A stretch of DNA of 63,525 nucleotides, counting the filler, from Octopus bimaculoides (lineage: Eukaryota): NCBI RefSeq assembly GCF_001194135.2. It is 5 parts of 4 records of this genome, joined end to end, with 100 filler letters (N's around TTAATTAATTAA, not from the genome) between each part and the next. Parts side by side here need not be neighbours in the genome. Positions count along the whole stretch, not along the records: positions 3,582 to 34,438 come from NC_069007.1; 4 more parts are not named here. The stretch is one strand, 5' to 3'. The translations under genes were made by a program, and so were the position numbers. Each line of letters opens with the position of its first letter. Position 1 is the stretch's first letter. Below are positions 11,055 through 34,482 of the stretch, one piece after another. Under the pieces are notes generated by a model. That model had not been told where the DNA came from, made no database searches, and saw only the letters and a program-made list of their open reading frames with translations.

Positions 11055-11184
11055 CTTTCTTGAAGCAACCTTTCAGGGACAAAGTGATTTTCATGTTTTT
11101 ATAACTTGAAGGTTTAAATTTAATTAAAATCCCTCTGGCTTTTGTTCCACTTGGAATAGAAGTACTTGCATTAGCATGACGGGT
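11055..11184 (-). CDS. Exon B3, C-terminal part of module 3 (130 nt, phase 0-1)
   Basis: ggctttgcag|ACCCGTCAT...AAGAAAG|gtatgt; TRHANASTSIPSGTKARGILIKFKPSSYKNMKITLSLKGCFKK; aligns with B1/B2. Confidence 0.85.
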
Positions 11185-11634: not shown

Positions 11635-11945
11635 TGACCTTAATAATAATAACAACATCAAAAAAATACCTTAGGAATGAGAACCCAGGTTCAAAATTTC
11701 CTCAAGACACCTGATGAAGGCTCGAGGGTATATCAGCCAAAACATTGAGTTAACAACAAACAAGATGAGTACAAATATCTGTCAAATGAGTGGCTGTGTG
11801 ATAAGTAGCTTGCTTACCAACCACATGGTTCCGGGTTCAGTCCCACTGTGTGGCACCTTGGGAAAGTGTCTTCTACTATAGCCTCGGGCTGACCAAAGCC
11901 TTGTGAGTGGATTTGGTAGACGGAAACTGAAAGAAGCCCGTCGTA

Positions 11946-12014
<69 letters not shown>

Positions 12015-12291
12015 ATATGTTTGTGTGTCTGTGTTTGTCCTCCCCCCACCAACATCGCTTGACAACTGATGCTGGTATGTTTACGTCCCTGTAATTTAGT
12101 GATTCGGCAAAAGAGACCGATAGAATAAGTACTAGGCTTCCAAAGAATAAGTCCTGGGGTCGATTTGCTCAACTAAAGGCGGTGCTCCAGCATGGCCACA
12201 GTCAAATGACTGAAACAAGTAAAAGAGTAAAAGAGAATGTAACAATGTAAATAATGTACATAATTCCTCATCTCCTAAATATAGAACTGTA
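11635..12291 (+). mobile_element. 5'-truncated repeat with hammerhead-like motif, interrupted by a SINE
   Basis: Homologous to the reverse complement of about 54985-55222; gacac-CTGATGA-aggct...agcc at 11706-11738. Confidence 0.7.
11788..12235 (+). mobile_element. tRNA-derived SINE, family 1
   Basis: gagtggctgtgtg..aagtagcttgc...ggttcagtccc head, internal (TA)n, aaaagagt tail; paralogs at 14911, 29041, 43523, 47797. Confidence 0.9.
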
Positions 12292-24930: not shown

Positions 24931-24975
24931 GAGTATTAAAAAATTATAGTTTAATTCATGATGATATGTACAAAC

Positions 24976-25017
24976 CTATTGCTGGAGGTTCTGAAGGCAG
25001 TGTAGATACAGCCGGTG
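24976..25017 (-). CDS. 42-nt micro-exon, divergent
   Basis: tcaattttcag|CACCGGCTG...GCAATAG|gtttgt; APAVSTLPSEPPAI; flanks homologous to the array units. Confidence 0.8.
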   Translation of the reverse strand, partial: HRLYLHCLQNLQQ

Positions 25018-25235
25018 CTGAAAATTGAAAATAGGTTATTTTATTCCATAGAATATCGAATTTCTGATTTTCTCAATATTTTATACAAGTGGTTCTTACA
25101 CACACTCATACACATACATGCACACACAGTCACATACAGTCATAAACACACATATACACACACACACACACATTCACCTGATGAATTAAATGGTATCACA
25201 CAAAGTGTTTTTAATTCATGATAATATGTACGAAC

Positions 25236-25277
25236 CTGTTGCTGTGGATTCTAAATATGGTGTTGACACGGATGATG
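25236..25277 (-). CDS. 42-nt micro-exon, TAT variant
   Basis: tcaacttccag|CATCATCCGTG...GCAACAG|gttcgt; ASSVSTPYLESTAT. Confidence 0.85.
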
Positions 25278-25479
25278 CTGGAAGTTGAAAATAGATATTT
25301 TATTCCATACTGCATTTAACAAAAAAATGAAATACATATCTAAAACTCAAGCAAACTCTCAGTCAATCACTACTCCCCTAATGATGTGACATACATTTCT
25401 CCATTATTGCCTTTTCCAAATTTGCTTATAATTTACTTTCACACACACACATTCACCCGTTGAATTAATATGTACGAAC

Positions 25480-25521
25480 CTGTTGCTGTAGATTCTAAAT
25501 ACGGTGTTGATACGGATGATA
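25480..25521 (-). CDS. 42-nt micro-exon, TAT type
   Basis: Identical exon sequence; 766 bp (about 3 periods) from the 26246 copy across an N gap. Confidence 0.85.
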
Positions 25522-26245
25522 CTGCAAATTCAAAATAGATATTTTATTCCATGCNNNNNNNNNNNNNNNNNNNNNNNNNNNNNNNNNNNNNNNNNNNNNN
25601 NNNNNNNNNNNNNNNNNNNNNNNNNNNNNNNNNNNNNNNNNNNNNNNNNNNNNNNNNNNNNNNNNNNNNNNNNNNNNNNNNNNNNNNNNNNNNNNNNNNN
25701 NNNNNNNNNNNNNNNNNNNNNNNNNNNNNNNNNNNNNNNNNNNNNNNNNNNNNNNNNNNNNNNNNNNNNNNNNNNNNNNNNNNNNNNNNNNNNNNNNNNN
25801 NNNNNNNNNNNNNNNNNNNNNNNNNNNNNNNNNNNNNNNNNNNNNNNNNNNNNNNNNNNNNNNNNNNNNNNNNNNNNNNNNNNNNNNNNNNNNNNNNNNN
25901 NNNNNNNNNNNNNNNNNNNNNNNNNNNNNNNNNNNNNNNNNNNNNNNNNNNNNNNNNNNNNNNNNNNNNNNNNNNNNNNNNNNNNNNNNNNNNNNNNNNN
26001 NNNNNNNNNNNNNNNNNNNNNNNNNNNNNNNNNNNNNNNNNNNNNNNNNNNNNNNNNNNNNNNNNNNNNNNNNNNNNNNNNNNNNNNNNNNNNNNNNNNN
26101 NNNNNNNNNNNNNNNNNNNNNNNNNNNNNNNNNNNNNNNNNNNNNNNNNNNNNNNNNNNNNNNNNNNNNNNNNNNNNNNNNNNNNNNNNNNNNNNNNNNN
26201 NNNNNNNNNNNNNNNNNNNNNNNNNTTGAATTAATATGTACGAAC

Positions 26246-26287
26246 CTGTTGCTGTAGATTCTAAATACGGTGTTGATACGGATGATA
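26246..26287 (-). CDS. 42-nt micro-exon, TAT type
   Basis: Identical to 26503-26544; 257-bp period. Confidence 0.85.
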
Positions 26288-26502
26288 CTGCAAATTGAAA
26301 ATAGATATTTTATTCCATGCTGCATTTAAGACAAAATAAAATACATACCCATAACTCAAGTAAACTCTCAATCAATCATTAATCCCCTAATGATGTGACA
26401 TACATTTCCCACTATTGCCTTTTCCAAATTTGCTTCTTATAATTCACTTTCACACATACACACATACACATACATTCATCTGATGAATTAATATGTACGA
26501 AC

Positions 26503-26544
26503 CTGTTGCTGTAGATTCTAAATACGGTGTTGATACGGATGATA
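26503..26544 (-). CDS. 42-nt micro-exon, TAT type
   Basis: Identical in sequence to 30589-30630, same AG/GT flanks. Confidence 0.85.
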
Positions 26545-27093
26545 CTGCAAATTCAAAATAGATATTTTATTCCATGCTGCATTTAAGACAAAATAATATA
26601 CACGTTCATAACTCAAGCGACTCTCACACAATGGTTTCTTCCCCACTGATGAGGCTGAAAAACCTAGATTCCTTTATTTCAGTAACTTTCAAAATGGCAC
26701 AAACATGACATACATGTTTCCACTATTGGCTTTTCCAAATTATATCAGAAAGAAGTTAACAGTGATGGTCATTACATATTTTGCTTTTATCAGGGCAAAA
26801 TTCTGTTTCCAGTTGTGTCCAGGAGTCATTATAGGTACATTACAGACAGGTTTACTCAACTGGTCTATTGACCAATTGAGGAGAATTGGACAACCTAAGG
26901 AAATTAATGCTACTTTCATCAGAACCATTTCTGGTTATAAGAAGCAGAGCACTGGAGGAATGGCTTTTGTGTGNNNNNNNNNNNNNNNNNNNNNNNNNNN
27001 NNNNNNNNNNNNNNNNNNNNNNNNNNNNNNNNNNNNNNNNNNNNNNNNNNNNNNNNNNNNNNNNNNNNNNNNNATTAAATATGATTAACTTAC

Positions 27094-27229
27094 TTATTGT
27101 TTGGAAACAGCCAATAATTGACATAGTGACAGTCATTTGTTCTTGTGAGTTTACTGATTGGAAGTGAATCAGAATCTGGCTTGCATTTGTTCCTTGTGGT
27201 ATTGTACCATTTTCAGTTGCTTCGAAAGT
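27094..27229 (-). CDS. Exon B2, C-terminal part of module 2 (136 nt, phase 0-1)
   Basis: TFEATENGTIPQGTNASQILIHFQSVNSQEQMTVTMSIIGCFQTI; ag...|gtaagt. Confidence 0.9.
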
Positions 27230-27528
27230 CTATTGAACAAAGAACCAGACATGATATTAAGAGAACACAGCTTTACAGAGTGTAGTCAATACCCAGTGTC
27301 TTGTCTTATATTTAGACTATGTGAATACCTAGTCATATTCGATAAAATATCCACCAGAGATATAAATTAGAACTAAACCAGTTTATTCACATTATTAAAA
27401 TCTCAAAACAATAAGATAATGCATAATTAATTTAAAACAAATGTGAATGAATAAGTATTATGTTTAACAGAAAAACCTGAATGTTAAAGGGTTAAACTAA
27501 TATAAAAGTAAATATTTATGTCACTTAC

Positions 27529-27791
27529 CCTAATTACATTTGAATGATCTTTCTGAAAACTTATGGTAAACGTAGCTACATTTTTATGCTTCTGTAAAAT
27601 AACTGCTGCTCCATATTTCAAAATGTTGTTATCAATTTTAACTCCAACTTTTGATGAAGCAGATGGCTTTATTTTCCAACCTGTTCCAAATGGCCGTAAC
27701 ACTTCTGGAGATTCCTTAGTTGTCATTAAGATATCAGAATCTGGGATATATTGCCCATTTGCCATTCCATCCATAAATCTGCAATTTTCAA
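27529..27791 (-). CDS. Exon A2, N-terminal part of module 2 (263 nt, phase 1-0)
   Basis: VENCRFMDGMANGQYIPDSDILMTTKESPEVLRPFGTGWKIKPSASSKVGVKIDNNILKYGAAVILQKHKNVATFTISFQKDHSNVIR; same splice sites as A1. Confidence 0.9.
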
Positions 27792-28029
27792 CTAAAACAA
27801 GAATTAAAAGGGTTTTGTTAAAATATCACATTTGAAATTCATGAGGTAAAATCTCAACAGTAGCTGAATTCTTTGGCTCAATGGTAGGGTACAGTTCACT
27901 GTTGTATTTAGTAGAGACATTAATAACATCATTTTTGATAAATAGAAAATTTGTAGGGGAGAAAAGTGAGTTAATAAGATTCATGTTTTCCTAAAGATAA
28001 TAGAAGAAGAAATAAAATGTTTATCATGA

Positions 28030-28940
28030 CATATGAAAACCGTGGCTGTCAATCTATATTTCTACCAATCTCTGTATTACTTTTCCTCAATTTTGACACA
28101 GATATACACACACTTAGTATGTGTGTGTGTATCTATCTATTTATCTATCTATCTATCCATATATATATATATATATATATAAATATATATGTGTATGTAT
28201 GTACTGATATGTAGTAGGAAGAAAGAAATTGGGAGAGTATGCCCATACATCTCAAAGCACACATATATACAATACATAAATATATGGTGAGATGTATCCA
28301 CACATTTACAGGATCCTACAACCAAATATGCATATCCCCCCATATTGACATGAAGATATATAGACGGACATGCATTTGCACTAACACACACACACATGCA
28401 ATGAATTGAAATGGTAGCATATAAATGGTTTTAATTCATGGTAATATTTACTAACCTGTTGGAGTAGATCCTGAATATGGCGTTGAGCTTGATGATCCTG
28501 GAAATGCAAAGTAGATAACTCATTTTACATTTTGGTAGAAACAAAATATAGCACTAGAAATTATGTTCACTCATTTTAGGTAATTTCTAAAATGGTATTA
28601 AAATGGCAGAGATGTCTCTACAATTGCCCCTTTATAATTTCAGTCTTTTATTTTCTTTCTAACAGTGTTTATGTTTAAGTCCAAAGAAATTAAATATTAA
28701 AGTTATGTGGAGTTTTTGATTATGAGAGAGAGTATTGACCAAATACAGCAAAGTGTTTTCATGTTGTGTGTGAAATACTTATGCATGTGTTTTTGTATTT
28801 ATGTAATTACACACATACAAAATTAACATATTGTTATGAGCAACAAATTATGTTAATGATAATTTCAACTTTGTACGACACATGTTAGATCACTGATCTC
28901 TGATTTTCCAAGGCAGGACAAAAACATTTACTGTAGGTTT
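28030..28940. repeat. Intragenic duplication of the TPT micro-exon block (partner about 32200-33240)
   Basis: Collinear similarity over about 900 bp including the TPT exon. Confidence 0.9.
28456..28497 (-). CDS. 42-nt micro-exon, TPT type (phase 1-1)
   Basis: ttgcatttccag|GATCATCAAG...CCAACAG|gttagt; GSSSSTPYSGSTPT; paralog of 32713-32754. Confidence 0.85.
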
Positions 28941-29040
28941 NNNNNNNNNNNNNNNNNNNNNNNNNNNNNNNNNNNNNNNNNNNNNNNNNNNNNNNNNNNN
29001 NNNNNNNNNNNNNNNNNNNNNNNNNNNNNNNNNNNNNNNN

Positions 29041-29292
29041 CTGCTAAGTTACAGGGATGTAAACACACCAACATTGGTTGTCAAGTGATGATGGGGGACA
29101 AAGACTGACACACAAATATATACACATATATATAATGGGCTTCTTTCAGTTTCTGTCTATCAAATACATTCAAAAGGCTTTGGTCGGCCCAAGGCTATAG
29201 TAGAAGACACTTTTCCAAGGTGCCTTGCAGTGAGACTGAACCCGGAACCATGTGGTTGGGAAGCAAGCTACTTACACATAGCCATGCCTGCG
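29041..29292 (-). mobile_element. SINE family 1 (partial)
   Basis: Reverse complement of the 14911 copy. Confidence 0.85.
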
Positions 29293-29294
29293 TC

Positions 29295-29345
<51 letters not shown>

Positions 29346-30374
29346 ATATGTGTATATGTCACTAAATGTGATTAGGATGAAAAAAAAAACATTTACATTG
29401 CTGGAAATCAAAAANNNNNNNNNNNNNNNNNNNNNNNNNNNNNNNNNNNNNNNNNNNNNNNNNNNNNNNNNNNNNNNNNNNNNNNNNNNNNNNNNNNNNN
29501 NNNNNNNNNNNNNNNNNNNNNNNNNNNNNNNNNNNNNNNNNNNNNNNNNNNNNNNNNNNNNNNNNNNNNNNNNNNNNNNNNNNNNNNNNNNNNNNNNNNN
29601 NNNNNNNNNNNNNNNNNNNNNNNNNNNNNNNNNNNNNNNNNNNNNNNNNNNNNNNNNNNNNNNNNNNNNNNNNNNNNNNNNNNNNNNNNNNNNNNNNNNN
29701 NNNNNNNNNNNNNNNNNNNNNNNNNNNNNNNNNNNNNNNNNNNNNNNNNNNNNNNNNNNNNNNNNNNNNNNNNNNNNNNNNNNNNNNNNNNNNNNNNNNN
29801 NNNNNNNNNNNNNNNNNNNNNNNNNNNNNNNNNNNNNNNNNNNNNNNNNNNNNNNNNNNNNNNNNNNNNNNNNNNNNNNNNNNNNNNNNNNNNNNNNNNN
29901 NNNNNNNNNNNNNNNNNNNNNNNNNNNNNNNNNNNNNNNNNNNNNNNNNNNNNNNNNNNNNNNNNNNNNNNNNNNNNNNNNNNNNNNNNNNNNNNNNNNN
30001 NNNNNNNNNNNNNNNNNNNNNNNNNNNNNNNNNNNNNNNNNNNNNNNNNNNNNNNNNNNNNNNNNNNNNNNNNNNNNNNNNNNNNNNNNNNNNNNNNNNN
30101 NNNNNNNNNNNNNNNNNNNNNNNNNNNNNNNNNNNNNNNNNNNNNNNNNNNNNNNNNNNNNNNNNNNNNNNNNNNNNNNNNNNNNNNNNNNNNNNNNNNN
30201 NNNNNNNNNNNNNNNNNNNNNNNNNNNNNNNNNNNNNNNNNNNNNNNNNNNNNNNNNNNNNNNNNNNNNNNNNNNNNNNNNNNNNNNNNNNNNNNNNNNN
30301 NNNNNNNNNNNNNNNNNNNNNNNNNNNNNNNNNNNNNNNNNNNNNNNNNNNNNNNNNNNNNNNNNNNNNNNNNN

Positions 30375-30380
30375 ATGATA
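30375..30380 (-). CDS. Partial TAT-type micro-exon cut by assembly gap
   Basis: Same acceptor and upstream intron unit as the 30589 copy; first 6 nt (TATCAT) precede the N run. Confidence 0.7.
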
Positions 30381-30588
30381 CTGCAAATTCAAAATAGATA
30401 TTTTATTCCATGTTGCATTTAAGACAAAATAAAATACATACCCATAACTCAAGTAAACTCTCAATCAATCATTAATCCCCTAATGATGTGACATACATTT
30501 TCCCACTATTGCCTTTTCCAAATTTGCTTCTTATAATTCACTTTCACACATACACATACATTCACCTGATGAATTAATATGTACGAAC

Positions 30589-30630
30589 CTGTTGCTGTAG
30601 ATTCTAAATACGGTGTTGATACGGATGATA
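30589..30630 (-). CDS. 42-nt micro-exon, TAT type (phase 1-1)
   Basis: ttgaatttgcag|TATCATCCGTATCAACACCGTATTTAGAATCTACAGCAACAG|gttcgt; VSSVSTPYLESTAT. Confidence 0.85.
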
Positions 30631-30963
30631 CTGCAAATTCAAAATAGATATTTTATTCCATGTTGCATTTAAGACAAAATAAAATACATACCCATAACTC
30701 AAGCGACTCTCACACAATGGTTTCTTCCCCACTGATGAGGCTGAAAAACCTTGATTCCTTTCTTTTGGTAATTTTCAATATGGCACAAATGTGACATACA
30801 TGTTTTCCACTATTGCCTTTTCCAAATTATATCAGAAAAAAGTTAACAGTGATGGTCATTATATATTTTGCCTTTATCAGGGCAAAATTTTGTTTCCAGT
30901 TGTGACCAATTGAGTTGTCTTTTACTTATTGAATTCCTGATTTTCTCAATATATTATACTAGG

Positions 30964-31352
30964 GTGGAGGCGCAATGGTCCAGTGGTTAGGGCAGTGAAC
31001 TCGTGGTCATAGGATCGCGGTTTCGATTCCCAGACCAGGCGTTGTGAGTGTTTATTGAGCGAAAACACCTAAAGCTCCACGAGGCTCCAGCAGGGTGGGG
31101 GGGGGCGAACCCTGCTGTACTCTTTCACCACAACTTTCTCTCACTCTTACTTCCTGTTTCTGTTGTGCCTGTAATTCAAAGGGTCAGCCTTGTCACACTG
31201 TGTCACGCTGAATATCCCCGAGAACTACGTTAAGGGTACACGTGTCTGTGGAGTGCTCAGCCACTTGCACATTAATTTCACGAGCAGGCTGTTCCATTGA
31301 TCGGATCAACTGGAACCCTCGAGGTCATAACCAACGGAATGCCAACTACAAA
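30964..31352 (+). mobile_element. tRNA-derived SINE family 3 with 11-bp TSD
   Basis: A box tggtccagtgg, B box ggtttcgattccc; attatactagg at 30953-30963 and 31353-31363; paralog 60405-60692. Confidence 0.88.
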
Positions 31353-31560
31353 ATTATACTAGGAGTTCTGATACAACTACACTCACATGCACAAACTTGT
31401 GAATTTACACTTACACAAAAATGTACACATACAAAAATTCATACACACAAATACACACAGACACACGTGCACACTCACACACATATGCATACACACATCC
31501 ACCTGATGAATTAAATGGTATCACACATATTGTTTTTAATGCATTATAATATATACAAAC

Positions 31561-31602
31561 CTGTTGCTGTGGATTCCAAATACGGTGTTGATACGGAAGA
31601 TA
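31561..31602 (-). CDS. 42-nt micro-exon, TAT type (phase 1-1)
   Basis: ttgaatttctag|TATCTTCC...GCAACAG|gtttgt; VSSVSTPYLESTAT. Differs from the identical copies only at synonymous sites. Confidence 0.85.
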
Positions 31603-32285
31603 CTAGAAATTCAAAATAGATATTTTATTCCAAACTGCATTTAAGACAAAATAAAATACATATCTAAAACTCAAGCAAACTCTCAGTTAATTGCTACTCC
31701 CCTAAAGATGTGACTTAAAAACCTTGATTCCTTTCTTTTGTTAATTTTCAAAATGGTACTAATGTGAAATACATTTTTCCACTATTACTTTTTCCAAATT
31801 TGCTTCTTATAATTTACATTCACTTTGTGCTTTTGTTGAAGTGTTAACACATTAGATATCAAAATTGACATTTGACATGTGTGGAATGCATCAACAAAAT
31901 ATATTGACTGTTTTCTCATCTCTTTTAGTTATGATCTGTATATATACCAGTTCCTCTTTGTATACCATTATACAAGTACCAATCTATGCCATCTCAACCA
32001 TTCAAGCCACCATTCATGTCAATTAAAAGAAAGAGAACCATTGAAAATGTTAGTTTTTTTAAATTCAAAAATATGTTTGTTGGTACAGCTCTCCAACAGA
32101 CCAATTTCAGTCAACCCCTCTAACCCATGCCAGCATGGAAAAAAAAAACGTTAAATGATGATGATGATGGAATGATTTTATTTGTGTTTGTCTGTCTGTC
32201 TATCTATCTATCTATCCATCAATATTTTAACCTATCTCTGTATTACTTTTCCTCACTTTTGACAGAAACATAAACACACTCAGTA

Positions 32286-32318
<33 letters not shown>

Positions 32319-32712
32319 CCCCCTCTCTCTCTCTNNNNNNNNNNNNNNNNNNNNNNNNNNNNNNNNNNNNNNNNNNNNNNNNNNNNNNNNNNNNNNNNNN
32401 NNNNNNNNATATATATATGTAAAAATATATATATATACGTATGTATGTACATATACGTAGTGTGGGGGGGGGGAGAAATTGGGAGAGTATGTCCATACAT
32501 ATCAAAGCACACACGCACACATATATACAATGCATAAATATATAGTGAGATGTATCCACACATTCACAGAATCCTATAACCTAATATGCATATCCCCCCA
32601 TATTGACATGAATATATATAGATGTACATACATTTGTACTTATACACACTCACACAATAAACTGAAATGGTAGCGTATAAATGGTTTTAATTCAAAGGTA
32701 ATATTTACTAAC

Positions 32713-32754
32713 CTGTTGGAGTAGATCCTAAATATGGCGTTGAGCTTGGTGATA
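32713..32754 (-). CDS. 42-nt micro-exon, TPT type (phase 1-1)
   Basis: ttgcatttccag|TATCACC...CCAACAG|gttagt; xSPSSTPYLGSTPT. Confidence 0.85.
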
Positions 32755-33526
32755 CTGGAAATGCAAAGTAGATAACTCATTTTACATTCAGGTAGAAACA
32801 AAATATAGCACTAGAAACTATGTTTACTCATTTTGGGTAATTTCGAAAATGGTATTAAAATAGCAGATATGTTTCTACAATTGCTTTCTCAAATTGCAGT
32901 CTTTCATTTTCTTTCGATTAGTGTTTATGTTTAATTCGAAAGAAGTTAAATATTAAAGTTATATGGAGTTTTTGATTATGAGAGAGAGTATTGACCAAAT
33001 ACAGCAAATTGTATTCATGTTGTGTGTGAAATTCTTATGAATCAGTTTCTGTATTTATGTAATTACACACATACAAAAATAACATATTGTTATGAGCAAG
33101 AAATTATATTGAGCAAGAAATTATATTGAGCAAGAAATTATACTGAGATAATTTCTCCTTTGTACGACACATGTTAGATCACCGGTCTCTGGTTTTCTAA
33201 CGCAGGACAACAAACTTTTACTGTGGGTTTGTTAATATTTGAAGCATAGGCAGTATGATTTTGGTGTTATTTTTACTGTTTGGGCGAACTATAAAGCCTA
33301 CTCATTGACATGTGGTAAGTTAATTCGTGTTGGGAGTTCATGCTGGAAGCCGATGTGAAAAATTCAGGAGGCTGTGTGTGGCGTAATAATATATACACAC
33401 ATTTATATACATAGATATATGTAAGGTAAAAGAAAAAAGAAAAAACAGAAACAAACACATACAGACACCAAACACAGCAGTAACACATTAAAGCACATCA
33501 GATACAATGAAATATGATTAACTTAC

Positions 33527-33662
33527 TTATTGTTTGGAAACAGCCAATAATTGTCATAGTGACAGTCATTGGTTCTTCTGAGTTTACTGATTGAAAGTGA
33601 ATCAGAATCTGGCTTGCATTTGTTCCTTGTGGTATTGTACCATTTTCAGTTGCTTCAAAAGT
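33527..33662 (-). CDS. Exon B1, C-terminal part of module 1 (136 nt, phase 0-1)
   Basis: ttttttcaatag|ACTTTTGAA...CAAACAATAA|gtaagt; TFEATENGTIPQGTNASQILIHFQSVNSEEPMTVTMTIIGCFQTI. Confidence 0.9.
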
Positions 33663-34130
33663 CTATTGAAAAAAGAACCGGATATGATACTAAGAGAACA
33701 CAGTTTTACAGAGTGAAGTTAATACCCAGTGTCTTGTCTTATATTTAGACTACAGAAAATTAAACAGTCATTAGAATCTGAAATCCATAAATGTAACCAA
33801 TGGATTACACTGGAATTGCCATATGGAATGTGCCATTTCTTCTTTTTCATTATGCAGTGTTCAATTAAAATATACGATATTTCAGGTATACGATCATAAC
33901 AAGTACAAAGATAGCTAAAACAGTATAATATCAAATTAAATGCCTTCTAGTCATTAAATGCCTACAATGTGATTCTCAAAATAGACAATTATATCATTAA
34001 AATTTCAAAGCCACAAAATAATGCATAATTAATTTAAAACAAATGTGAATGAATAAACTTTATGTTTAAAAGAAAAATCTAAATTTTAAAAGGTTAAATT
34101 AATATAAAAGTAAATATTTATGTCACTTAC

Positions 34131-34393
34131 CCTAATTACATTTGAATGATCTTTCTGAAAACTTATGGTAAACGTGGCTACATTTTTATGCTTCTGTAAA
34201 ATAATTGCTGCTCCATATTTCAAAATGTTGTTATCAATTTTAACTCTAACTTTTGATGAAGCAGATGGCTTTATTTTCCAACCTGTTCCAAATGGCCGTA
34301 GCACTTCTGGAGATTCCTTAGTGGATATGAAGATATCAGAATCTGGGATAAATTTCCCTTTTGCCATTCCATCCATAAATCTGCAGTTTTCAA
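34131..34393 (-). CDS. Exon A1, N-terminal part of discoidin-like module 1 (263 nt, phase 1-0)
   Basis: ttcttgttttag|TTGAAAACTGC...GTAATTAGG|gtaagt; xENCRFMDGMAKGKFIPDSDIFISTKESPEVLRPFGTGWKIKPSASSKVRVKIDNNILKYGAAIILQKHKNVATFTISFQKDHSNVIR. Confidence 0.9.
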
Positions 34394-34482
34394 CTAAAAC
34401 AAGAATTAAAAGGGTTTTGTTAAAATATCACATTTGAANNNNNNNNNNNNNNNNNNNNNNNNNNNNNNNNNNNNNNNNNNNN

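Follow-up and report, generated by a model that had tools for sequence, protein, structure and literature searches.

The window analysed here, a whole stretch of 63,525 nucleotides from Octopus bimaculoides, contains nucleotide-identical 42-mers set in similar introns. It raises the question of whether these are exons of a coding tandem array, and what has kept them alike. The best explanation as a whole, considered reasonably probable, is a modular mucin-like gene whose linkers derive from duplicated exon+intron units that would be kept alike by exchange.

Exon map and copies of the 42-mer

The gene is on the minus strand, and its 5' end lies beyond the piece edge at 34438. It contains an all-beta domain of about 131 residues, split over two exons and linked by mini-exons with the borders cag, 42 nt, gttcgt and a symmetric phase 1-1. 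The core mini-exon peptide is (V)SSVSTPYLESTAT. Domain 1 exon A (34131-34393, phase 1 in and phase 0 out) encodes VENCRFMDGMAKGKF...HSNVIR and was recognized as a tblastn match; its borders were set by homology to domain 2 exon A at an offset of 6602, and its DNA is 88.5% identical to O. vulgaris L001 14940-15527. Domain 1 exon B (33527-33662, phase 0 in and phase 1 out) encodes TFEATENG...MTIIGCFQTI. It is followed by a 'b'-type linker mini-exon at 32713-32754 (10 mismatches to the core), which encodes SPSSTPYLGSTPT and is the ortholog of the sole O. vulgaris linker exon (L001 21241-21282); its splice flanks, ttgcatttccag, ..., gttagtaa, are the same in both species. The mini-exon at 31561-31602 differs from the core at three positions, all of them synonymous (3/3), and encodes (V)SSVSTPYLESTAT. 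An identical core copy at 30589-30630 belongs to array 1, and intron 30381-30588 joins it to a fifth copy, truncated by a 960-N gap. The 6 nt assembled of this copy (30375-30380) are its opening nucleotides on the minus strand and its last ones as read along the contig, which they open at 30375.

A second 'b'-type linker mini-exon, at 28456-28497 (11 mismatches), encodes SSSSTPYSGSTPT; it is immediately upstream of domain 2 and collinear with O. vulgaris L001 20806-21369. Domain 2 exon A (27529-27791; borders ttttag, TTGAAAATTGC...ATTAGG, gtaagt) and exon B (27094-27229; borders caatag, ACTTTCGAA...ACAATAA, gtaagt) were delimited by reading the sequence and by tblastn. Identical core copies at 26503-26544, which opens array 2, and at 26246-26287 are separated by intron 26288-26502 with a TG-rich microsatellite inside, and another identical copy, at 25480-25521, lies beyond a 671-N gap. 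The mini-exon at 25236-25277 has four differences (three synonymous, one V to A) and encodes (A)SSVSTPYLESTAT, and the diverged edge mini-exon at 24976-25017, with 13 differences, encodes PAVSTLPSEPPAI. Further along the minus strand are a 33-nt linker mini-exon of phase 1-1 (22756-22788; TSAAVSSVPT), ortholog of O. sinensis L002 2906-2938, and domain 3. Exon A of this domain (14568-14839) shares 35% identity and its intron phases with domains 1 and 2 and carries a gttcgt donor; its ortholog is spliced in within the O. sinensis RefSeq model P0003/P0043 (isoforms). Domain 3 exon B is at 11055-11184.

There are exactly four occurrences of the 42-mer CTGTTGCTGTAGATTCTAAATACGGTGTTGATACGGATGATA, at 25480, 26246, 26503 and 30589, as the initial annotation had reported, and the identity common to all four copies extends over 70 nt (the 42-mer plus 19 nt on its left and 9 nt on its right). 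The period of 257 bp that was proposed with it is correct for the pair 26246/26503 only; elsewhere the spacing is 244, 250, 260 or 972 bp, the last corresponding to a dispersed repeat inside the intron. Copies are present in the proposed array span of 24950-30720, but this span is interrupted by both exons of domain 2, the different linker exon at 28456, a SINE-like element at 29043-29300 and four gaps. Tandem Repeats Finder reported no array of about 250 bp here, because any one contig holds at most about two to three units and the outer units are too diverged.

Similarity of the repeat units and its origin

An alignment of core introns 26288-26502 and 30381-30588, the sole complete ones assembled, has matching bases at 204 of its 207 positions (98.6%). 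Identity to this pair is 90-91% in the intron below 25480; in the outer introns it is 73-87%. When the exon-intron-exon blocks of arrays 1 and 2, on either side of domain 2, were compared, they were about 99% identical, against about 91-93% for their flanks (Fisher P = 6e-4); the flank just upstream of the core introns is 92.6% identical. There are three substitutions in 295 nt at 26282-26576 and 22 in the next approximately 245 nt. Along this directly observed identity gradient, the edge copies are the most diverged, and the outer units are 73-91% identical. The signature of homogenisation expected from unequal crossover or gene conversion, the process suggested at the outset, is therefore present. 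Homogenisation of the units is supported by these sequence comparisons, with its estimate drawn from two complete core introns, and recombination would be the mechanism behind it. Domain modules are also more alike within species (94-97%) than between species (86-92%), an excess that could stem from independent duplications instead of conversion.

In O. vulgaris, whose locus is gapless, a single linker exon separates the two domains and no other follows them. In the gapless O. sinensis locus the 33-nt exon is the only one present, and no array was found within 2.9 kb upstream of it. The array is missing from these two sister-group loci and therefore looks lineage-specific to O. bimaculoides, in a sequence comparison that is one of presence versus absence between species.

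The protein is probably modular, mucin-like, and predicted to be secreted and O-glycosylated, with globular all-beta domains that would be joined by Ser/Thr-rich linkers, each linker made of 42-nt (14-codon) mini-exons. An ancestral single 'b'-type linker exon, of the kind also present in O. vulgaris, may have been duplicated together with an intron of about 210 nt that brought its TG microsatellite along, giving rise to a short tandem array on each side of domain 2. The central units would then have been held near-identical, within and between arrays, by unequal crossing-over and/or gene conversion, while edge units may have drifted; purifying selection would have preserved the peptide. All intervening introns are phase 1, which would let units be added, lost or skipped with the frame kept. 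The linkers may carry glycans, the exchange may still be under way, and copy number may vary among individuals at present, which would make the array a coding VNTR.

It is somewhat unlikely that recent duplication alone explains the array, with young copies made in one or two bursts, including a move between arrays, and a copy number now fixed with no continuing exchange. Young age and homogenisation are inseparable by identity alone, just two complete core introns can be compared, and the array, missing in both O. vulgaris and O. sinensis, must be young under either reading. Against such bursts, identical units flank domain 2 in modules otherwise about 94% identical, and divergence shifts sharply at the unit border. 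The closer similarity of domain modules within than between species is seen in both species, and an Argonauta relative has at least five tandem modules that are near-identical (98-100%).

Coding evidence and assembly gaps

Continuing with the modular gene with exchange between units as the preferred explanation, the proposal that each repeat is its own exon agrees with the sequence, in which the repeats have AG/GT borders, phase 1-1 and a frame shared with the domain exons. All ten full-length mini-exons (nine of 42 nt and one of 33 nt) have an AG acceptor, a GT donor, an open Ser/Thr frame and a length divisible by three. Both the end of domain exon B and the beginning of exon A are in phase 1, which lets the mini-exons read through between them, and the junction ...PT|VENCRF agrees with O. 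vulgaris model P0001. In the copies at 31561 and 25236, six of seven changes are synonymous, compared with 29% expected (P = 0.003). Their coding nature is thus supported by kept splice sites, frame compatibility with the domain exons and the synonymous bias, and the mini-exons would be spliced into the linkers. Ser+Thr make up 50% of the peptide VSSVSTPYLESTAT, which has one Pro; the b-type and edge exons encode more Pro.

Somewhat less probable again is that these are genuine copies of a linker exon and its intron that lie mostly unused in a long intron or a decaying gene, with no array at the protein level. VSSVSTPYLESTAT was found in no protein or transcript-derived ORF among 5.8 billion proteins, transcriptome-derived ones included; the negative from one of these searches is weak, as it also missed the known homolog P0002. 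RefSeq has no gene model at the locus over domains 1 and 2 or these exons, and P0004, the sole local model, is chimeric with a transposon ORF. The introns are full of SINE and retroelement insertions, and the donors carry a T at +3. However, the borders, length and open frame are kept in 10/10 mini-exons, and the synonymous bias also speaks against disuse. The uncommon gttcgt donor is borne by, and works in, the conserved domain 3 exon A, and all three modules have kept their domain exons intact.

The true copy number is concealed by assembly gaps. The two further copies that had been placed in the 671-N gap are arithmetically sound, as the gap amounts to 1.98 periods on top of the 162 nt lacking from one unit. 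The gap flanks, however, overlap at 94 of 95 positions, and given this overlap copies 25480 and 26246 could be one and the same copy. Array sequence borders the 960-N gap on one side alone. Where a draft built from short reads has its copies filled with pooled repeat reads, their similarity can be overstated. An assembly artefact, either a short-read consensus laid down repeatedly or one physical unit set on both sides of a spurious gap, would mean that the real copy number and unit similarity differ from the scaffold; this is quite doubtful. Besides the 94/95 overlap, it is favoured by the gapped short-read draft itself, in which the contig ends at 25554, 26226 and 30375 all fall inside units and two gaps are the conventional 100 N, and by an unplaced 964-nt contig (L005) with a further module copy, which means that the locus is incompletely assembled. 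Two full units with differing outer flanks are nevertheless contained in the gap-free contigs 26226-26973 and 30375-32334 (the latter with 1.02 units plus copy 31561), and three units in contig 21245-25554. Unit-specific variants, e.g., G/C at 26297 and microsatellite length, and the graded edge divergence with synonymous-only changes are unlike a collapse. Very unlikely is a cassette array of symmetric 42-nt exons that would provide linkers of variable length, individual-specific or by splicing, with an origin in the O. bimaculoides lineage and a copy number still changing; if true, it would make this surface or secreted glycoprotein the cephalopod counterpart of the schistosome 'controlled chaos' mucins.

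Placement of contig L005 next to contig end 28940 was ruled out by eye, as their overlap of about 26 nt holds several mismatches. The plus-strand ORF 26612-26971 is intron sequence, and its Pfam scan gave nothing usable.

Comparable repeat genes and the protein family

The architecture of the modular mucin-like gene is already known from SmPoMuc, Flag silk and DMBT1, and no new mechanism is revealed. By its sequence, the gene has the repeat in an exon of its own and the homogenised introns of SmPoMuc- and Flag-type arrays. Schistosoma mansoni polymorphic mucins (SmPoMuc) have a 27 bp repeat exon, introns more than 94% similar and units with microsatellites; these exon+intron repeats are ascribed to concerted evolution by gene conversion or unequal crossing-over and defeat sequence assembly (PMC2576457). 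As there, a short repeat peptide is coded in its own small exon (27 bp there, 42 bp here) inside an exon+intron repeat, with a microsatellite in the units, very similar introns (98.6% in the core here), repeats that defeat assembly and concerted evolution as the proposed cause. There is no sequence relationship between the two, and SmPoMuc units are about 1 kb and up to 20 in number, while the octopus units measure about 250 bp and are interleaved with globular domains, and no more than a handful are assembled. SmPoMuc is a multigene family with proven transcripts and inter-individual polymorphism, whereas the octopus gene is known from the sequence of one genome assembly.

Each SID of DMBT1 is reportedly a separate small exon, as attributed to Mollenhauer et al. 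1999. Globular domains and short Ser/Thr/Pro-rich spacers alternate in tandem repeat in both genes, but DMBT1 has an SRCR domain with one spacer exon per domain, and the octopus gene an unclassified beta domain with several identical spacer exons in runs. Human DMBT1 (gp340 / salivary agglutinin) has 8 to 13 SRCR domains, varying between people (PMC5435793). The repeat modules of spider flagelliform silk (Flag) and Coccidioides SOWgp are summarised as tandem exon+intron units evolving in concert, with introns homogenised at least as much as exons (PMC2576457). Repeated protein modules as genomic exon+intron units evolving in concert are common to Flag, SOWgp and the octopus gene, whereas Flag and SOWgp exons are much larger and the proteins and taxa unrelated.

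The octopus gene offers a clear case, from an invertebrate, of a protein linker able to grow by copying a frame-neutral exon plus intron, and it illustrates how short-read genomes leave such loci under-assembled and without annotation. Its interest for octopus biology is that it draws attention to an unannotated member of a mucin-like family without a Pfam model. The Pfam scan of the domain translations from the window gave no hit at E <= 1 except a sub-threshold match to the unrelated fvmYukDl_N. A gel-forming mucin (VWD-C8-TIL) was ruled out, as the window domains are without a Pfam hit; the sole VWFD/TIL links are source names and Pfam hits of distant homologs from Macrostomum and a rotifer. 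The gene does not belong to the classical mucins, which have VWD domains. Its predicted Ser/Thr-rich repeats with some Pro agree with the PTS composition of mucin-like proteins. An F5/8 type C (discoidin) domain, presumed a candidate from the pattern C..GM..I.D...GC, was ruled out by the lack of a Pfam match, an AlphaFold pLDDT of 57 and generic best PDB fold matches. Foldseek against PDB gave generic jelly rolls with E >= 0.005 and TM <= 0.46; matches to picornavirus capsids and vicilins are noise of this kind, and the AlphaFold model is too weak for a fold. A bacterial profile match, P0008 (amidase/ChW protein), is low-complexity noise.

When the domain was used in a profile search, 41 proteins were found at E <= 1e-3, six of them at E <= 1e-10, with a shared Cys...Cys frame and motifs; the domain pattern is C..GM...IPD...RP..W...GC. 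The family is unclassified and lophotrochozoan, with members annotated as "mucin-like", and beta domains alternate with Pro/Thr/Ser-rich (PTS) linkers in all ten sequences read with at least one complete domain. In Patella vulgata XP_055959230 ('mucin-2-like') and Mytilus californianus XP_052090872 ('mucin-17-like'), a beta domain homologous to that of the window alternates with PTS linkers. Argonauta hians GAB1608769/70 and O. bimaculoides XP_052821907 also have the homologous domain and PTS linkers, and the octopod genes split the domain by the same phase-0 intron. Unlike in the window gene, the PTS repeats of the paralog XP_052821907 are in one 315-nt exon, and the Argonauta linker is fused to domain exon A. 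A linker divided into exon units of 42 nt is peculiar to the window gene.

Predicted mini-exon units and their reading frame

The predicted gene, with all its parts on the minus strand, has units of a 42-nt mini-exon and its intron placed between two-exon modules that code for a domain of about 131 residues. The unit sequence is ...ttgaatttgcag|TATCATCCGTATCAACACCGTATTTAGAATCTACAGCAACAG|gttcgtac..., and its phase 1 translation is (V)SSVSTPYLESTAT. In a search of the window, exactly four copies of the 42-mer were found, at 25480, 26246, 26503, and 30589, which confirms the identical exons of the initial annotation; the identity extends over 70 nt. A fifth copy is cut at the start of the contig at 30375, where its final six bases precede a complete unit intron. 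Diverged copies at 31561, 25236, 32713, 28456, and 24976 have 3, 4, 10, 11, and 13 mismatches to the 42-mer, respectively. The proposed period of 257 bp holds for the pair 26246/26503 only, while elsewhere the unit spacings are 244, 250, 260, or 972 bp. The last of these separates 30589 from 31561, where the intron still has unit-type ends and carries an inserted dispersed repeat at about 30950-31342, present also in O. vulgaris and O. sinensis. The array was not called by Tandem Repeats Finder.

All nine 42-nt copies, as well as a 33-nt linker exon at 22756-22788 (phase 1-1), are bordered by AG and GT, have lengths that are multiples of three, and keep the Ser/Thr frame open. In the two copies nearest to the core, six of seven substitutions are synonymous, versus 29% expected from the possible single changes (P = 0.003, or about 0.01 with a shared change counted once). 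Orthologs of the diverged b-type linker exon and of the 33-nt exon in O. vulgaris and O. sinensis agree with them in length, phase, and splice flanks. The units share their uncommon donor, gttcgt, with the conserved exon A of domain 3; in O. sinensis, the RefSeq model splices the ortholog of this exon A. Protein searches did not find the repeat peptide in a collection of 5.8 billion proteins, and domains 1 and 2 have no gene model at the locus. The units are likely coding, and the earlier proposal that each repeat is its own exon is supported, at the level of sequence, by splice borders, the phase 1-1 frame, and the synonymous changes.

Exons A and B of domain 1 are at 34131-34393 and 33527-33662, those of domain 2 at 27529-27791 and 27094-27229, and those of domain 3, which is 35% identical to the other two, at 14568-14839 and 11055-11184. 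In each domain, exon A starts in phase 1 and ends in phase 0, and exon B ends in phase 1, which allows in-frame joining of mini-exons and domains. The O. vulgaris gene model P0001 uses the predicted junction ...PT|VENCRF. Because the mini-exons are each 42 nt long and of phase 1-1, the reading frame holds for any number of units in the assembly gaps.

Probable homogenisation and assembly gaps

Two complete introns, one between 26503 and 26246 and the other below 30589, match in 204 of 207 aligned bases and differ in microsatellite lengths, whereas the 216 nt next upstream are 92.6% identical. Near-identical introns of homogenised units, as described in the initial annotation, are thus supported. 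The aligned blocks have 3 substitutions in 295 nt (26282-26576) versus 22 in the next roughly 245 nt, and this step coincides with a unit border. Domain 2 lies between the two blocks, whose modules are otherwise about 94% identical. Blocks of about 99% identity within such modules suggest that array units exchanged sequence after the modules had diverged, or else that units were merged by the assembler. Toward the array edges, the divergence of units grows progressively, a pattern expected from unequal exchange in the centre of the array. Within O. bimaculoides, as within O. vulgaris, the domain modules share 94-97% identity, compared with 86-92% across the two species, and five or more tandem modules in an Argonauta paralog have 98-100% amino-acid identity. 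From these identities, this mucin-like family seems prone to concerted evolution of its exon-intron modules. The initial interpretation, a coding VNTR with unequal crossover or gene conversion acting now, is partly supported, namely in the separate exons and in the homogenisation, the latter being a reading of the sequence pattern and not of present-day activity or of copy-number variation among animals.

The piece 3582-34438 (NC_069007.1) contains 10 internal runs of N, four of them within the array and its modules (25555-26225, 26974-27073, 28941-29040, and 29415-30374). At the first, of 671 N, unit register is kept on both flanks. The left contig ends 74 nt past an exon start and the right one begins 20 nt ahead of another, so 162 nt of one unit and a whole number of periods would be absent. 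The estimated gap length corresponds to 1.98 extra periods, which fits the two more copies proposed between 25480 and 26246. However, the 95 nt on either side of the gap are the same in 94 of 95 positions; the gap may be spurious, and 25480 and 26246 one single copy. Several more copies were also suggested for the 960-N gap (29415-30374), but unit sequence borders it on the high-coordinate side only, with a SINE-like element and an AT microsatellite on the other. For both 100-N gaps, the N count is a convention rather than a measured length; comparison with the other module indicates that the one at 26974-27073 could conceal a b-type linker exon.

The domain and its mucin-like family

The domain has no Pfam model and no significant fold match in PDB, and AlphaFold gave a weak all-beta model (pLDDT 57). 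Among 1.8 billion representative proteins, 41 relatives were recognized by profile search. Patella "mucin-2-like" (4007 aa), Mytilus "mucin-17-like" (4412 aa), Argonauta proteins, and Macrostomum VWFD proteins are among the relatives or cluster members. In all 10 inspected sequences with at least one complete domain, it alternates with Pro/Thr/Ser-rich (PTS) stretches, and by this shared alternation the predicted gene belongs to an unclassified mucin-like family of lophotrochozoans. Domain 2 matches an O. bimaculoides RefSeq fragment at 93% identity, and UniProt A0A0L8FRM4_OCTBM contains exon A of domain 3 exactly. The latter is a chimeric prediction of this true exon (14568-14839, minus) and a transposon-derived ORF (12898-13197, minus).

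In contrast to the separate unit exons of the window gene, the linker of an O. bimaculoides paralog is one 315-nt exon, and that of Argonauta is fused to domain exon A. The Argonauta hians modules (BAAFZT010000069.1, 2686-9819) are about 1.3-1.5 kb each, in the order PTS linker fused to exon A, intron, and exon B. The next gene model there has >4781 residues.

Other octopuses and known systems

In the gapless O. vulgaris locus (OX597840.1), one b-type linker exon separates the two domains, and no 42-nt unit follows within 9 kb after domain 2. The O. sinensis locus (CM016886.1), also gapless, is collinear with window 23305-4791 and has the 33-nt exon, with no 42-nt unit within 2.9 kb upstream of it. 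Judging from these spans, the VSSVSTPYLESTAT units are probably an expansion in the O. bimaculoides lineage out of the b-type exon. An unplaced O. bimaculoides contig of 964 nt (LGKD02032813.1, 1-964) carries one additional domain-1/2 module, with 90.5% identity to window 27074-27767 and about 92.5% to 33199-34369. As it is unplaced in a chromosome-level assembly, the scaffold shows fewer modules than the locus holds.

The array has the same architecture as the Schistosoma SmPoMuc genes, in which a 27-bp exon lies within a genomic repeat of about 1 kb, with microsatellites between units, introns >94% identical, concerted evolution, and repeats that defeat sequence assembly; spider Flag silk and Coccidioides SOWgp are cited as further cases (PMC2576457). 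The nearest analogue for a domain with short S/T/P spacer repeats is human DMBT1, which varies in copy number (PMC5435793). With its cephalopod host and unrelated protein family, the octopus array adds a new example of a known gene structure.

Other repeats were identified in the window. A SINE-like dispersed element (29043-29300, 11788-12238, and 14906-15340) has many 74-93% identical copies in the O. vulgaris and O. sinensis loci. Another dispersed element, found in both species too, forms a 155-nt inverted repeat (21303-21457 and 22060-22214, 95% complementary, 602 nt apart) and occurs again at 19442-19754. Degenerate retroelement fragments are within gene introns at 23865-24606 (plus) and 13487-13705 (minus), one a frameshifted reverse transcriptase (RVT_1) and the other a sub-threshold match to an integrase zinc-binding domain. 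In the intron region between domain 3 and the linker exons, 18695-19161 is a tandem duplication (period 233 bp, two copies, 93% identical). A 17-bp tandem triplication at 33093-33147, in the intron below domain 1, is single-copy in the paralogous intron (28825-28857).
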